Below, in pieces: positions 690-59,072 of a DNA stretch of 64,000 nt; the first letter of the stretch is position 1; every line of letters begins with the position of its first letter. Under the pieces are notes generated by a model that did not search any database, was not told where the DNA came from, and saw only the letters and a list, made by a program, of their open reading frames with translations. The translations under genes were made by a program, and so were the position numbers. Location of the stretch: IMG/VR virus record IMGVR_UViG_3300017971_000185, positions 310,001 through 374,000 of that record, one strand, 5' to 3'.

Positions 690-707
690 GTAGTGCGTCC
701 AGAACGC

Positions 708-781
708 GCGCTGAGAGGGGGTCGAACCCTCGACCTTCCGGGCGAATACCCCGGCTGCTCGGCCTACTGAGCTTCCAGCGC
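708..781 (-). ncRNA. tRNA-like cloverleaf with a non-canonical anticodon loop, in the 5' region of the Pth-like gene
   Basis: Acceptor GCGCTGG/TCAGCGC, D arm GCTC/GAGC, stem CCGGG/CCCGG with loop GTATTCG, T arm GAGGG-TTCGACC-CCCTC. Confidence 0.7.
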
Positions 782-2998: not shown

Positions 2999-3514
2999 GG
3001 TCCTACTTCACGATCTTCCATAGCCTACCTATCGAGAGGCTGTTTGGGGTAAGGTGTTCTATCATGGTGTTGGAAGCACTACCGAAGACGGAGCGCATTC
3101 GGCGGCTGATAAAGAAGGCGGATTTGGCAGTTGAGCTTGCGAGGCTGTCGCTCCCAGCGCACTCGAGTCTTGAGGAAGTTGAGGAGAAAGCTCTCAAGTA
3201 CATGAGTCTCACGAACAAGGAGATTCAGGCTCGGATTCGGAAGAAGCAGAAGTAACGTGGATTCGTGGGCGTGTGTGTAAGATGAGAGATGCGTGGGACG
3301 TGGAGGGCGAGGAGTCCGTAGCTCTCGTGAAGTGGTGTGACAAGCGGAAGTGCCTCCGAATCGGCGTACCACAAGGCGGCTGCCGAGGAGCTAGCGGTGC
3401 AAACGGGAGAGCAGAAACCCCGATAACGCTCGGGGCCGGCGGCCCGTCTCTACCCGTTTGCGAGGTCGGCTTTGGACGGAGCCGAGGTCAACCTATCCTC
3501 GCTCCAGTATACCC

Positions 3515-3543
3515 TTGCATTTGCTCAGGGAGTCGTGTAGAAG
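3515..3543 (+). promoter_or_regulatory. sigma70-like promoter of the Ile2/Arg/Val tRNA operon
   Basis: TTGCAT-N17-TAGAAG. Confidence 0.55.
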
Positions 3544-3559
3544 GTGATCAGAGGTCAAC

Positions 3560-3658
3560 ATGTTCATCCTCAGCCGTCGAATATCCAAGCCTGTCGCCCC
3601 CGTTCCCAGCGGTATGGGTGTCGTCGTCGTGCGCTTGGCGTTTGACAGGCGACGGTGA
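3560..3658 (+). CDS. leader peptide MFILSRRISKPVAPVPSGMGVVVVRLAFDRRR
   Basis: SD GAGGT; contains ATA, GTC x4, GTT, AGG and CGG, matching the downstream CAT(Ile2), GAC, CCT and CCG anticodons. Confidence 0.7.
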   Translation: MFILSRRISKPVAPVPSGMGVVVVRLAFDRRR

Positions 3659-3691
3659 ACGCCAGGCTCAAGGACCGCGGAACGGGCGTAT

Positions 3692-3765
3692 AGGCCCGTA
3701 GCTCAGTCGGTTAGAGCGTGGGGCTCATAACCCCGTGGTCCTCGGTTCAATCCCGAGCGGGCCTA
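3692..3765 (+). tRNA. tRNA with CAT anticodon, probably tRNA-Ile2 (lysidine type)
   Basis: Cloverleaf AGGCCCG/CGGGCCT, loop CT-CAT-AA; initiator and elongator Met tRNAs are present elsewhere. Confidence 0.85.
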
Positions 3766-3780
3766 CGAAAAGCATTCAAG

Positions 3781-3854
3781 GAGGACGTATCGGCCCAGTC
3801 TCCTAAACTGGCAAGCCGTAATGGATGATGGGGGTTCGAGTCCCTCCGTCCTCA
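3781..3854 (+). tRNA. atypical tRNA-Arg(CCT) lacking a normal D arm
   Basis: Acceptor GAGGACG/CGTCCTC, anticodon arm CCAGT-CTCCTAA-ACTGG, T arm GGGGG-TTCGAGT-CCCTC; D region reduced to TATCGGC. Confidence 0.65.
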
Positions 3855-3862
3855 CTATACCG

Positions 3863-3888
3863 AGGTTCAAATCCTGCCGGGGACGCCA
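3863..3888 (+). pseudogene. orphan 3' tRNA fragment (T loop, 3' acceptor strand, CCA)
   Basis: AGGTTCAAATCCTGCCGGGGACGCCA with no matching 5' half nearby. Confidence 0.5.
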
Positions 3889-3897
3889 AGGAGAAAC

Positions 3898-4170
3898 ATG
3901 AAGAGACGCACGTTCATAGGCAGCCTGTTCGCGGCCCTTGGAGCGATCTGCTTCCCTTGGAAGAGACGCAAGCGCAAGAAGTCTCTAGAGGAGATCAAGC
4001 AGGAGATCCTCATGGAGTACTTTCGTTCTCCTCAAGCACGAGGGAAACTGGCTGTAGGTATGGCTTTCCCTCTCCGAATGCGTCGCAACTATGCAGAGAT
4101 TGGCAAGAGGATCTTTCTTGTGGAGGAATTGCCATCGGGCGCTCTCCCCTTCTACGACAGGGAGCCATGA
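3898..4170 (+). CDS. small protein: Tat-like N-terminus plus a segment resembling a phage major capsid protein N-terminus
   Basis: SD AAGGAG; MKRRTFIGSLFAALG followed by ARGKLAVGMAFPLRMRRNY...FLVEELPSGALPFYD. Confidence 0.5.
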   Translation: MKRRTFIGSLFAALGAICFPWKRRKRKKSLEEIKQEILMEYFRSPQARGKLAVGMAFPLRMRRNYAEIGKRIFLVEELPSGALPFYDREP

Positions 4171-4357
4171 AAGAGCACTGTACCAGACATCTCCGAAAAG
4201 GGATCAAGAAGCCAGCCGTGTACATCCTCGAAGGCGGGCTATGCGAGACTTGTTGGATCGATTGGTGGATCGAAGGACTGCACATCGAGAACCCGAGAGA
4301 ACGAGCCAAAGTACGTCGAGAGACAAAAGCTGCCTTAAGGAGAAGACGCAAGCGAAA

Positions 4358-4434
4358 GGCCGGGTAGCTCAGATGGTTAGAGCACCATCCCGACACGGTG
4401 GGGGTCCTCGGTTCGATCCCGAGCCCGGTCACCA
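4358..4434 (+). tRNA. tRNA-Val(GAC)
   Basis: Cloverleaf with CCA; loop CC-GAC-AC (C33). Confidence 0.9.
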
Positions 4435-4435
4435 C

Positions 4436-4510
4436 GTTCCTGTAGCTCAGCCCGGACAGAGCGTCACGTTCCGAACGTGAGGGGCGTAGGTTCAAATCCT
4501 ACCAGGAACG
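4436..4510 (+). tRNA. tRNA-Arg(CCG)
   Basis: GTTCCTG/CAGGAAC; loop TT-CCG-AA. Confidence 0.92.
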
Positions 4511-5559
4511 CAAGTATACTTTCTGCCGAAACTCACGTAGACAAGAGCGTGTGGAGACGACACAAACCTCTTCAACGAGCTACTGTAGGAGGTAAGCTAT
4601 GGGCATGCCCCAAAAGGGTTCCCGTACGCGCTTGAAGGATGAAGATGCCGTCGTGTCCCTCTTCGTCATGCGCGACGCCAGCTTCTAGTTGTACGTTTCC
4701 GCCATCGGGAGGCACACGGAATTCTTGCTCCTCTCCGAACCGGCTGCCCGCTTCGCCCGGCTCACCCGGCTCGCCTCCAAGGTCCGCCTGGATCTTGCCT
4801 TCGCCGCCCGGCGTGAGAATGACATCATCAGGATGGGATTCTTGTGGGTTTGTGATCTCTGGCACGTTCCACTCTACCAACCAGAGGTATCGGGATTTGC
4901 CAGCATGGCGTGGCGCTCAGCCACACGTCGGGAGCGTCTGAGGCATCGTGGCTTGCCGTCGATGGGTTTGCCGTCGAGGTACACGAGGTAGTCGTCTGTT
5001 CGCTGTTGTTTCACCGGACGAATTTCGTAGCCCTTCCACGTGTACGTGTACGACGTGTTTCCTTTATCCAGGCGAGGGACCCACGTAGCCATGCTTCTCT
5101 CAAGAGAACACAATACGCTCAGTACCGATCCAGATGGTGTAGAATAGGGCAGTGGACGATTACCGCAAGATCGACGCAGCGGTTCCCGTAGCGAGGAAGA
5201 AGAACCTCACCATCCGCATGGCTTGCTTCAGCGAAGAAGAAGCACGAGCACTAGAGGACTACGCGAAGAACAAGTACCCGGATGTTTCGTTCCAATTCAC
5301 TTGGCTCACGTTTTTCGATCCCAATGAAACAGACGCTAACAACTGAAGAAGTGCTACGACAGCGCGTTCAAGGTGCCATCCGCGAGGAGATTCGGTTGCG
5401 CATAGTATGGGAAAATGCGGTAGAGCGTGCCAAGACAGGCGCTCCTGGTGCGCGGCATGCCGAAGAGGACGCTGCGTATGCCCTCGGCCTAGCTCGCAAA
5501 CAAGTGAACGAGCAAATGCGGCAGTTGATGGAGCACTGTCGCCGGAGGTACGGATACGG

Positions 5560-6489
5560 CTAGTAGAGGTTTCTGATCTCAGGCGCAGCCGTGAACAGGC
5601 GGCAATGCGTTCCCGGTGTATAGTACCGTAACTGCAAACCGTTGCGAGCTAGTGCATGGTGGACGGGAGGATCCGAGATGCGCGTCGTGTTCTGCTGACA
5701 GGCGAACGTCGTTGTCCACGTTGCGTTGAAGGACGGGATGTACTCGTAAGCGGTTCGCGTCACACGGAAGGCTGAGCGGATGGTCTTGATGATTTCGACG
5801 TGGTGAGCATCGAGGGGACCGCTCAGGCGGATGCCTCCTGTCTGTGCGGCAAAGATGCCTCTGTCACGCAGTTTCCCGCCAATGGCCGAGAAGAAGTCCT
5901 TGGTGAACAACCGCTCAGAGAGATTGTTGCTGTCGCCCGTGTCATCGTAGGGCTCAGTGAGATCGGAGATGATCACGTTCCAAGTCTGGTTCTCGTTGAG
6001 CACAGTGGACGCGTCGGAGATGCGGACGGTAACGCGCTCGTCCTCGAATGCGCCGTGTGTCCATTCGGGAAAGAGCACCTTGAAGGTCTCGATCATGTCT
6101 TCATCGATCTCGACCAAGCAGACTTCTTTCACGTCGGGCCACTTGAGCACTTCGCGGAGAGCACAGCCATCGCCGCCACCGAGGATGAGCACACGCCCGA
6201 TGTTCTGGGCCATGACCATGGCCGGATGCACGAGCATGTCGTGGTAGATATACTCGTCACTCTCCGCAACCTGGATGCGCCCGTCTAGAATCAGAGTGCG
6301 TCCGAGGTCCGCGAAGTCTGCTAGCTGGATGAGTTGGTACTCGCTTTGCTTTTCGTAGAGGAGATCGCGGATACCCCACAGAGCGAAGAAGGATTCGCTC
6401 TCTGCCTCAAGAAACCAGCGCGGCTGTCGAGTCTCCAGCAAGTGCGGCAGAGATTCCAACGGACTAAAGATTCGGTTGGCTGGTATCAC
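5560..6489 (-). CDS. speE: polyamine aminopropyltransferase (spermidine synthase family)
   Basis: QSEYQ, LILDGRIQ, YHDMLVHP, VLILGGGDG, VEID and DLTEP motifs; GTG start overlaps the upstream TGA. Confidence 0.92.
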   Translation of the reverse strand: MIPANRIFSPLESLPHLLETRQPRWFLEAESESFFALWGIRDLLYEKQSEYQLIQLADFADLGRTLILDGRIQVAESDEYIYHDMLVHPAMVMAQNIGRVLILGGGDGCALREVLKWPDVKEVCLVEIDEDMIETFKVLFPEWTHGAFEDERVTVRISDASTVLNENQTWNVIISDLTEPYDDTGDSNNLSERLFTKDFFSAIGGKLRDRGIFAAQTGGIRLSGPLDAHHVEIIKTIRSAFRVTRTAYEYIPSFNATWTTTFACQQNTTRISDPPVHHALARNGLQLRYYTPGTHCRLFTAAPEIRNLY

Positions 6490-6691
6490 CAACGGAGTCC
6501 CTCCTTGCGCCGTTGTTCTTGCTCCTCGCAGACGCTCCGAAGCTGGCTCCAATTGCGGATGACGTTGAGATCGTCCAGGGCTTCTTTGGTTTCCTGGGTC
6601 ATCGTGGCTTGGAAAGGCAGCCGATCGTCGTTGCGGAAGCTCTCGCTCGCGTAGTTGAAGGTCGTGATGTTTTGCCGTCTCACACTCTACC

Positions 6692-9791: not shown

Positions 9792-10856
9792 ATGCCCAAG
9801 AAGACCAAGAAGCAAAAGACCAAGAAAAAGAAGACTTCCGCCGCGCGAGCCACCAAGGTGAGGAAGCCTCCCAAGAGGAAAACCCCCGGATTGAGCGGTG
9901 CAGAACGAGCCGCCAAGAAACGAGCCGCACGCAAGAAGTTGACTGCGGACAACCGACGCAAGAAGTACGCTAAGCGCACGACGGAGTTTGGCGCACGAAT
10001 CACTCTGACTCGCGCGAAGGGTCTCCTCTCTCTGAATTATGAGGGACAGCGGAACCTCCGTCCCACCAGAGTCGATCAATTCTGTGGCATTCTCCGTCGC
10101 GGGTTGTGGATTGAGTCCGGTGAGCCCATCATCATCGACTGGTTTGGGAACCTGATCAACGGGCAGCATCGGCTGGCTGCCATCGTCAAGACCGGAATCA
10201 CCGCCAAGATCGACATCACCTATGGCGTTCCGCCAAAGGCGTTTGATGTGATCGATACTGGTGCCGTGCGTGCTCTCTACGACATCCTGCCTGTGGAGTT
10301 TCCCAAGCAGGTTTCGGCGCTGTATCGCGTCTACCTGGATTTCAAGACCACCGAGGGAGCGACTTACACCAGCTTTGGTCGACGGAGTGCTTCGGCCTTC
10401 CGTGAGGATCGGACCGGAGCCATCCAGTGGGCGCAGCGGAACGAAAAGCTCTTGACCAAGATCGTCAAGACGTGTCATGTGGACAAGGACGCTCGCGCAT
10501 TGCTCCGTCCTCCCGCAGTGTTTAACGCGTTCTACTTCCTCGTCGCTCGCAAGGCACCCAAGGAAGCGGACACGTTCTTCCGCACTCTGATCGACGGCGT
10601 GGAGTTTGAGTTGAAGGGGCTCGACCCCATCTACCAGCTTCGGCAGAATCTCGTGATGTTCAACGACAAGTACAAGAACAAGCGAGGGACTGCGGTGCCT
10701 CTGTGGATGATCGGAGGCATGCTCATCAAGGCGTGGAATGCCTACATGAAACGTGCGCCCGTTCGCCAGCTTCGGATGATGTCGAGCGAGAAGTGGCCTG
10801 AGATCACGAGTCGGACTACTCGGGCTCGGAAGTCTGCGAGGAAAGCCGCCGCGTAG
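9792..10856 (+). CDS. ParB/Srx-like domain protein with a basic N-terminal tail
   Basis: GEPIIID..GNLINGQHRLAAIV, FDVIDTGAVR. Confidence 0.7.
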   Translation: MPKKTKKQKTKKKKTSAARATKVRKPPKRKTPGLSGAERAAKKRAARKKLTADNRRKKYAKRTTEFGARITLTRAKGLLSLNYEGQRNLRPTRVDQFCGILRRGLWIESGEPIIIDWFGNLINGQHRLAAIVKTGITAKIDITYGVPPKAFDVIDTGAVRALYDILPVEFPKQVSALYRVYLDFKTTEGATYTSFGRRSASAFREDRTGAIQWAQRNEKLLTKIVKTCHVDKDARALLRPPAVFNAFYFLVARKAPKEADTFFRTLIDGVEFELKGLDPIYQLRQNLVMFNDKYKNKRGTAVPLWMIGGMLIKAWNAYMKRAPVRQLRMMSSEKWPEITSRTTRARKSARKAAA

Positions 10857-14310: not shown

Positions 14311-14653
14311 TCGGTCGAGAGGATGAGGAGATCGCAGCCGCAAGGCTGAGGAAAGTCCGGGCTCCGTAGAGCAGCGTGCTTGGGAAATCCAAGTCGGGGC
14401 GACCCGCAGGAAAGTGCCGCAGAAAGCAAACCGCCGATGGCCTTCGGGCACAGGCAAGGGTGAAAGGGTGGGGTAAGAGCCCACCGGGTTCCTGGCGACA
14501 GGGATCGCATGGTAAACCCCACGCGGAGCAAGACAAACAGAGAGCGCTGAAGTTGCTCGCCTAGCTCTCGGGTTGTCGCAAAGATGAATGATCGCCACCT
14601 GGCAAGGGCAACCGACCCAGGGACAGAACCCGGCTTACGACCCTCTCGGCCGA
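14311..14653 (+). ncRNA. rnpB: RNase P RNA (bacterial type A)
   Basis: GAGGAAAGTCCGGGCTCC, GGAAAGTGCCGCAGAAA, GGTAAACCCCAC..GGAGCAAG and ACAGAACCCGGCTTA; P1 TCGGTCGAGAGG/CCTCTCGGCCGA. Confidence 0.95.
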
Positions 14654-39765: not shown

Positions 39766-39769
39766 GTTT

Positions 39770-39853
39770 TTCTCCCCGAGCGACGGCGCTTTCGCCAACT
39801 CCGTCAGGACCGGAAGGTAGCAGCGGTAACGGAGGACCGGGTGCTCGGGGGAA
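39770..39853 (+). ncRNA. ffs: small SRP RNA (4.5S-like)
   Basis: Helix-8 motif GTCAGGACCGGAAGGTAGCAGC inside a hairpin closed by CCCCGAGC/GCTCGGGG. Confidence 0.85.
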
Positions 39854-39905
39854 CGTTTCACCGAGCCGGGGTCGTCGGTGGGCGCTTATCGCCGCGGAGA
39901 GGCGT

Positions 39906-58100: not shown

Positions 58101-58172
58101 GCGTGTGTAGCTCAGTTGGCAGAGCATCAGCTTCCATGCTGAGGGTCGCGGGTTCGATCCCCGCCACATGCT
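58101..58172 (+). tRNA. tRNA-Gly-type body with a 6-nt anticodon loop (probably a defective Gly(CCC))
   Basis: TCAGC-TTCCAT-GCTGA. Confidence 0.65.
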
Positions 58173-58191
58173 CGAAAGGAAGAACATGAAC

Positions 58192-58559: not shown

Positions 58560-58934
58560 ATGGCACAGATCACCAAAGAACAGGTCATTGACTATCTGGG
58601 GGCCCTCTCGCCTTCGGAAATGGCTATCCTCATCGAGAACCTGGAAGAGACGTGGGGCATGGAGATGTCCCGGCCAACTCAGCAAGCACCGAAGGTCGAG
58701 CAAGAGAAGGAGGAAGAACAGACGGAATTCGAGGTCATACTTGAGAGTTTCGGAGACAAGAAGATCGACGTGATCAAGACCGTTCGCCAGGAGAAGCCGG
58801 GGATGGGTCTCAAGGAAGCAAAGGAGTTTGTCGAGTCTGCGCCGGTTACGATCGGTGAGGCGCTCTCAAAGGAGGAAGCAGAGGAAGCCAAGGCCAAGCT
58901 GGAGGAGGCAGGCGCAACGATCACGATCAAGTAA
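58560..58934 (+). CDS. rplL: 50S ribosomal protein L7/L12
   Basis: EEQTEFEVIL..GDKKIDVIK.VR...GLKEAKEFVESAP..SKEEAE..KAKLEEAGA. Confidence 0.95.
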   Translation: MAQITKEQVIDYLGALSPSEMAILIENLEETWGMEMSRPTQQAPKVEQEKEEEQTEFEVILESFGDKKIDVIKTVRQEKPGMGLKEAKEFVESAPVTIGEALSKEEAEEAKAKLEEAGATITIK

Positions 58935-59013: not shown

Positions 59014-59072
59014 AGGGACGTAGCTCAATGGAAGAGTGCCGGAAGCTGCGGGTTCGAATCCCGTCGTCTCCA
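59014..59072 (+). ncRNA. anticodon-arm-less tRNA-Ala-like RNA
   Basis: Acceptor with G3:U70 and A73; D and T arms present; only GCCGGAAGCT between them. Confidence 0.65.

Follow-up and report, generated by a model that had tools for sequence, protein, structure and literature searches.

A 74-nt tRNA-like gene lies at positions 3781-3854 on the plus strand of the window, a 64,000-nt stretch corresponding to bases 310001-374000 of the 497,194-bp IMG/VR virus record IMGVR_UViG_3300017971_000185. The record is that of a huge phage, estimated by CheckV to be 94% complete, with a G+C content of 57.7%. ARAGORN finds 46 tRNA genes in the genome, 44 of them in the window, and Rfam adds a bacterial type A RNase P RNA at 14315-14653 on the plus strand (RF00010, 247 bits), an SRP RNA at 39767-39859 and two tRNA hits that ARAGORN misses, one of which is the gene at 3781-3854. 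A canonical tRNA-Met at 3692-3766, called by ARAGORN and by Rfam at 68.4 bits, is located 14 nt upstream on the same strand and belongs to the same tRNA cluster, and a degenerate tRNA 3' fragment lies immediately downstream at 3855-3888. The next ORF, at 3898-4170, contains an unremarkable two AGG and two AGA codons. Pfam gave no match for the five flanking ORFs tested, and a scan of 3200-4700 for promoters and terminators found one weak promoter-like site, about what shuffled sequences give, and no terminator. The first-pass annotation had taken an AGG codon in an operon leader as a hint of function, but this is not supported as stated, since no leader ORF is evident and AAGGAGG at 3777-3783 is simply the 5' edge of the tRNA.

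The acceptor stem is formed by seven Watson-Crick pairs between GAGGACG (3781-3787) and CGTCCTC (3847-3853), followed by the discriminator A3854, and no CCA is encoded. Between the acceptor stem and the anticodon arm there are only seven nucleotides, TATCGGC (3788-3794), comprising T8 and A9 (3788-3789) and T-CGGC (3790-3794). The anticodon arm (3795-3811) is perfect, with the stem strands CCAGT (3795-3799) and ACTGG (3807-3811), and a 7-nt loop CTCCTAA (3800-3806) that has U33 and A37 and carries the anticodon CCT at 3802-3804, which would read AGG. It is followed by the 18-nt stretch CAAGCCGTAATGGATGAT (3812-3829), consisting of a CAA linker (3812-3814), GCCG (3815-3818) and TAATGGATGAT, and by a canonical T arm (3830-3846) with the stem strands GGGGG and CCCTC, including one G-T pair, and the loop TTCGAGT. 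The minimum-free-energy fold (-28 kcal/mol, z = -2.0) pairs CGGC at 3791-3794 with GCCG at 3815-3818, stacked under the anticodon stem with a CAA bulge, and leaves TAATGGATGAT single-stranded. The Rfam tRNA model (RF00005) scores the gene at 35.7 bits against a gathering score of 29, but only by skipping 15 model positions where the D arm should be. The gene is not an assembly artefact, as contigs from runs not flagged as the source cover it with no differences and a 372-kb contig from another sample carries it identically. The first-pass annotation, which described a tRNA-Arg(CCT) with its D loop apparently relocated to the variable region, is exact with respect to the sequence.

To determine whether this layout is conserved, relatives of the gene were sought. 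BLAST with the gene itself found nothing among 50,697 phage records, whereas motif patterns retrieved tRNAs with different acceptor and anticodon stems but the same layout. A pattern specifying only the anticodon loop, TAATGG and the T loop, which left both strands of the disputed helix free to vary, hit 54 viral contigs but only 6 of 185,579 species-representative bacterial and archaeal genomes; one of these hits, in Brucella cytisi, lies among PHROG-matching genes and another is on a contig carrying 27 canonical tRNAs. One member used as a BLAST query matched eight GenBank phage records, namely Limnohabitans phage DC31, Agrobacterium phage Atu_ph04 (two records), Streptomyces phages Enygma and Francob, Pseudomonas phages vB_PF_Y1-MI and Bitten, and Stenotrophomonas phage SOVA965, and in none of these is anything annotated under the match. 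In four of the six records examined, the gene sits inside the tRNA cluster, in three of them on the same strand as the annotated tRNAs, whereas vB_PF_Y1-MI lists its tRNAs on the opposite strand to the match. In DC31 the only nearby annotated tRNA is about 1.5 kb downstream, and the Atu_ph04 stretch carries no annotation at all. A covariance model built from 36 members (R1) then found 77 distinct members in 63 loci, in phage contigs, six cultured phages and a few probable prophages. In the window's own genome only 3781-3854 scores high with this model (82.8 bits, E 1.8e-19), with ordinary tRNAs reaching 31 bits or less. This copy was in the seed, so its score holds partly by construction, but non-seed members score 37-85 bits. 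ARAGORN calls only 1 of the 77 members, with wrong ends.

The family supports the pairing between the 5' CGG and the CCG downstream of the anticodon arm that had been proposed from the single sequence. RNAalifold on an unfitted MAFFT alignment of 36 members predicts the acceptor, anticodon and T stems and a three-pair helix joining nt 11-13 to the three nucleotides preceding TAATGG, which in the window copy are CGG (3791-3793) and CCG (3816-3818). Pair counting on this alignment gives 93.9% paired cells and a covariation score of 0.748, compared with 0.19 in shuffles and 0.14 or less with slid partners, and on the 77-member alignment the values are 96.7% and 0.884 against 0.21, although the covariance-model alignment leans toward the model structure. 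All seven acceptor pairs, all five anticodon stem pairs and the T stem pairs covary. The three pairs of the new helix read CG67/UA7/AU2/GC1, GC57/AU8/CG8/UA3/UG1 and GC43/CG18/AU2/UG2/other12, and in an alignment whose members were collected without constraining either strand they are kept through changes on both sides in 10, 20 and 22 sequences. There are more than ten Watson-Crick-compensated variants, and the strand combinations include CGG/CCG (37), CAC/GTG (7), CGC/GCG (5), CCC/GGG, CTG/CAG, CAG/CTG, CTC/GAG, AGC/GCT, AGG/CCT and CCG/CGG. The fourth pair of the window copy, C3794-G3815, forms in only 7 of 36 aligned members, and this position behaves like the usually non-Watson-Crick 26:44 pair. 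The alternative in which CCGTAATGG forms its own CC-GTAAT-GG mini-hairpin is rejected, since wherever those Cs change this pairing breaks without compensation while the long-range helix is compensated. The low Rfam score, the lack of an ARAGORN call and the neighboring degenerate fragment could point to a decaying pseudogene or a chance remnant of a rearrangement in this one genome, but this is very unlikely given that the same architecture occurs in 77 distinct sequences from unrelated phage lineages and hosts, with compensatory changes in all four helices and intact anticodon loops.

The unpaired nucleotides can be mapped onto the canonical tRNA core, although the numbering and the tertiary contacts are inferred from conservation. 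Reading Y-CGG-N (3790-3794) as positions 22-26 and N-CCG-T (3815-3819) as positions 44 and 10-13 gives one continuous helix of 5 + 1 + 3 + 1 layers, the same ten layers as the canonical anticodon stem, the 26:44 pair and the D stem, such that the anticodon-to-elbow distance would be kept. The T after CCG would then be position 13 and is followed directly by the proposed displaced D loop AATGGATGAT (3820-3829), assigned as A14 A15 T16 G18 G19 A20 .. A21 and then T48, which would pair with U8 and the T loop to rebuild the L-shaped core. The nearly invariant unpaired bases in the family are T8 and A9 (77/77), the T, A, A, T, G and G after the 3' strand (77, 77, 75, 74, 70 and 77 of 77), the A and T before the T stem (77 and 72 of 77), and T54, T55, C56 and A58 of the T loop. 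This invariance is partly built in, because the search patterns required TAATGG and GGTTCRANTCC, and TA at positions 8-9 was required by one filter and by the model seed; however, the 13 members found only by the model show small variants such as TAGTGG and TAACTGG that keep the A and the GG. In contrast, the stretch between the anticodon stem and the 3' strand of the D-stem equivalent (the CAA linker plus the base corresponding to G3815, 4 nt here) is 3-11 nt long in the A2 alignment with no sequence conservation, and in the window copy the linker forms a bulge at the place where a canonical variable loop leaves the helix. The proposed 15:48 pair is equivocal, with one supporting change (G/C in the member L095:5299-5377) and one contrary pairing (A with C in L152 and L138). 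In a canonical tRNA, position 9 would be expected to contact the 12:23 pair, position 21 to stack on the 8:14 pair, and positions 44-45 to lie beside position 10, so the three new joins (9 to 22, 43/44 to 10 and 21 to 48) likely connect residues that are already neighbors. The resulting chain order, 1-9 | 22-43 | short linker, 44 | 10-21 | 48-76, is what a tandem duplication of segment 10-45 followed by loss of the first 10-21 and the second 22-45 would give, which is a non-circular permutation. It remains possible, though unlikely, that the molecule is a D-armless tRNA with a looser boomerang shape, in which the helix forms but the conserved TAATGG...AT stretch is a protein-recognition or modification site, for example for ArgRS. 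Bacterial translation tolerates an engineered D-armless tRNA (PMC11551756), but the conserved unpaired bases coincide one-for-one with the canonical core set U8, A14, R15, G18, G19, A21 and Y48 together with a fully canonical T loop, and the stacked helix has the canonical number of layers.

The anticodons of the family are TCT (55), CCT (9), ACG (3), TCG (2), GCG (1), TAT (6) and TAC (1), nearly all in 7-nt loops with U33. The base directly after GG is A in 65 of 70 Arg-type members and T in all 7 Ile/Val-type members (Fisher p = 3e-7, not corrected for relatedness), and the non-Arg members carry five different helix variants, indicating that they form several lineages. This fits A20 as a major identity element for bacterial ArgRS (PMC9976931), and the three canonical Arg tRNAs of this phage also read GGA. 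Of the 63 loci, 42 are tRNA clusters, and no member has a separate canonical tRNA of the same anticodon in its locus. In Enygma the annotated Arg tRNAs within the 24-kb stretch examined (76-100 kb) are tcg and acg, and the unannotated member supplies tct; in the contig with 27 canonical tRNAs the canonical Arg tRNAs are ccg, acg and cct, and the member again supplies tct. In the present phage the canonical Arg tRNAs are ACG, CCG and TCT, the gene at 3781-3854 is the only CCT, and the set otherwise pairs U34 and C34 tRNAs for Lys, Glu, Gln and Leu-UUR. AGG accounts for about 10.5% of Arg codons, or 7.7 per thousand codons, in a crude ORF set. No ArgRS gene is in the phage, which excludes co-evolution with a dedicated synthetase for this genome and means that a host enzyme would have to charge the tRNA, presumably through C35, U36 and the A after GG. 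The phage does encode RNase P RNA, a likely 5'-processing activity for the tRNA set, and a CCA-adding-type nucleotidyltransferase domain at genome positions 454428-454883, which fits the tRNA genes here, including this one, that lack an encoded CCA.

A tRNA mimic not used for decoding, such as a decoy for a host tRNA-Arg-directed nuclease or toxin, a regulator or sponge for ArgRS or another tRNA-binding protein, or a processing or priming element inside tRNA operons, is also conceivable. Phages carry tRNAs that counter host tRNA-cleaving defences (bioRxiv 10.1101/2025.02.04.636281), and the window holds other aberrant tRNA-like genes, one with a 6-nt anticodon loop at 58101-58173 and one without an anticodon arm at 59014-59072. 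This explanation is doubtful, since a decoy would not need seven different anticodons, a correlation of the anticodon with the ArgRS identity base, the filling of otherwise empty anticodon slots in large, nearly complete tRNA sets, and the strictly kept 7/5 acceptor/T-arm geometry needed by EF-Tu, all together. The most likely reading, to which we assign a probability of about 0.7, is that 3781-3854 is an intact gene for a functional elongator tRNA-Arg(CCU) of a phage-borne class that has escaped annotation, in which the segment matching canonical positions 10-21 lies after the anticodon arm instead of before it. The structural interpretation is supported by strong covariation, whereas the retained L shape is inferred, as are transcription, RNase P cleavage, CCA addition, charging by the host ArgRS and reading of AGG on the ribosome, because all 12 runs containing the locus are DNA metagenomes from sediment or seawater. 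No selective reason for the rearrangement is known. One speculative and rather improbable possibility is that the class is an adaptation, in which the re-threaded core of tRNAs mostly for AGA/AGG is still accepted by host ArgRS, EF-Tu and the ribosome but is no longer recognized by host defence nucleases, toxins, or modification and turnover enzymes that read the D-arm and variable-loop face, which would amount to a structural counter-defence and a natural orthogonal tRNA scaffold.

No description of such a tRNA was found in the literature searched, which did not cover most subscription journals, so a prior description elsewhere cannot be excluded; a review of non-canonical tRNAs (PMC7609411) and the allo-tRNA paper (PMC5389517) do not mention this layout, and Rfam 15 has no dedicated family. 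A conserved, widespread tRNA class with a re-threaded core would show that the L shape, not the cloverleaf connectivity, is what the translation machinery requires, and would provide a natural test case for how ArgRS, RNase P, the CCA enzyme, EF-Tu and modification enzymes read tRNA. It would also correct phage annotation, in which the AGA/AGG decoding capacity of many phages would be underestimated, and could offer a new scaffold for orthogonal tRNAs.

When comparing the gene to known systems, D-armless mitochondrial tRNAs such as metazoan mt-tRNA-Ser(AGY) and nematode mt-tRNAs (PMC4013460, PMC7609411) likewise have only a short connector between the acceptor and anticodon stems, but they lose the D element altogether and usually the canonical T loop, and need adapted partners, whereas here the D element is kept but moved, the T loop is canonical and the setting is bacterial translation. 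The engineered mini HisT lacking the D arm shows that bacterial aaRS (HisRS), EF-Tu and ribosome, those of E. coli, can use a non-cloverleaf tRNA, but it is man-made and lacks the D element; the same 2024 paper states that no natural tRNA diverging from the cloverleaf is known in bacterial translation (PMC11551756). Class II tRNAs (Leu, Ser, Tyr) also have more than 10 nt between the anticodon and T arms, and the GTAATGG motif occurs in variable-arm hairpins of phage tRNA-Leu and tRNA-Ser, but they have a normal D arm and a self-contained variable hairpin, whereas here the extra segment pairs with the 5' connector. In the circularly permuted tRNA genes of Cyanidioschyzon merolae (PMC3978253) the 3' half precedes the 5' half and processing restores a normal tRNA, whereas here the acceptor strands are in normal order and no known bacterial pathway would re-sort the internal segment. 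The TYMV tRNA-like structure, a non-circular permutation, and bacterial Y RNA (YrlA) reach a tRNA-like shape with a different strand order (PMC11472068), but these are mimics that do not decode codons, whereas this family has true anticodon arms and acceptor ends and sits among tRNA genes. The same kind of rearrangement, in which a segment is moved within the chain while the three-dimensional positions are kept, was reported in 2023 for hairpin and hammerhead ribozymes as the first such cases in natural non-coding RNAs (PMC10085705), a different RNA class, with tRNA treated only as an example of gene-level circular permutation that processing restores. Canonical class I bacterial and phage tRNA-Arg shares with the gene the 7-bp acceptor stem, the 5-bp anticodon stem with a 7-nt loop, the 5-bp T stem with a TTCRANY loop, U8, the GG of the D loop followed by A20, the total length of 74 nt and the location in a tRNA cluster, but here there is no D hairpin between positions 9 and 26, and the 5' D-stem strand and the D loop are encoded after the anticodon arm, so that the secondary structure is a three-way junction with a long bulged helix and not a cloverleaf.

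The region immediately following the re-wired tRNA, window 3855-3888 (+), contains a degenerate fragment resembling a tRNA 3' end (…GAGGTTCAAATCCTGCCGGGGACGCCA), which is positioned directly after the re-wired gene and just before the RBS of ORF 3898-4170. Comparison with L006, the 372-kb relative, showed that the fragment is identical in that contig, and it matches no full tRNA in the genome. A 376-nt contig from the same sediment metagenome (run X2, contig record 15) matches the re-wired tRNA core over window 3786-3828 with 5 differences in 43 nt, and is probably a related phage's copy.

Two further aberrant tRNA-like genes are present in the window. At 58101-58173 (+), an otherwise normal tRNA (Rfam, 58.8 bits) has a 6-nt anticodon loop, TTCCAT, which ARAGORN reports as "tRNA-??? 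anticodon (cc)"; this gene lies where a Gly-CCC or similar tRNA might be expected in the cluster. At 59014-59072 (+), a 59-nt tRNA-like gene (Rfam, 44.2 bits, with no ARAGORN call) has an acceptor stem, a D arm, and a T arm but no anticodon arm, and similar elements without an anticodon arm appear in other phage contigs (designated L142, L032, and L187). The tRNA-Asn with anticodon ATT that is called on the minus strand at 706-781 (-) is reported by ARAGORN alone, with no Rfam hit at the gathering threshold, indicating that it is probably a false call. The phage additionally encodes RNase P RNA (14315-14653, 247 bits), SRP RNA (39767-39859, 57.7 bits), a homologue of ribosomal protein bL12 (58560-58934 (+), Pfam PF00542, 94 bits), and a spermidine synthase homologue (5560-6552 (-), PF01564, 126 bits).

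Among the re-wired tRNAs, single phage contigs were found to carry three members each, as observed for L013 (an 88.6-kb contig), which has TCT, CCT, and TAT anticodons, for L160, which has TCT, GCG, and TCG, and for L095, which has two TCT members, one of them in a loop that does not parse as 7 nt, and one TCG. The design has therefore diversified within genomes. Two family members, at L095:5533-5614 (+) and L140:11027-11102 (+), the latter on another contig, have anticodon loops that do not parse as 7 nt (TGTTCTAA and TCTTCTAC contexts), and these could have either 8-nt loops or shifted stems. In two cultured phages, HNH (homing) endonuclease genes lie just upstream of the re-wired tRNA, at 956-1492 of the SOVA965 stretch (L211) and at 916-1323 of the Bitten stretch (L212), which hints at mobility of the tRNA cassette, and in Bitten the tRNA locus tags skip number 0007 at exactly this spot. 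A phage tRNA-Arg(CCT) in a further contig, L009 (about 10160-10260 (+)), has a normal D arm together with a long, self-pairing variable arm and is class II-like, which is unusual for Arg and represents a different design from that of the re-wired tRNA.
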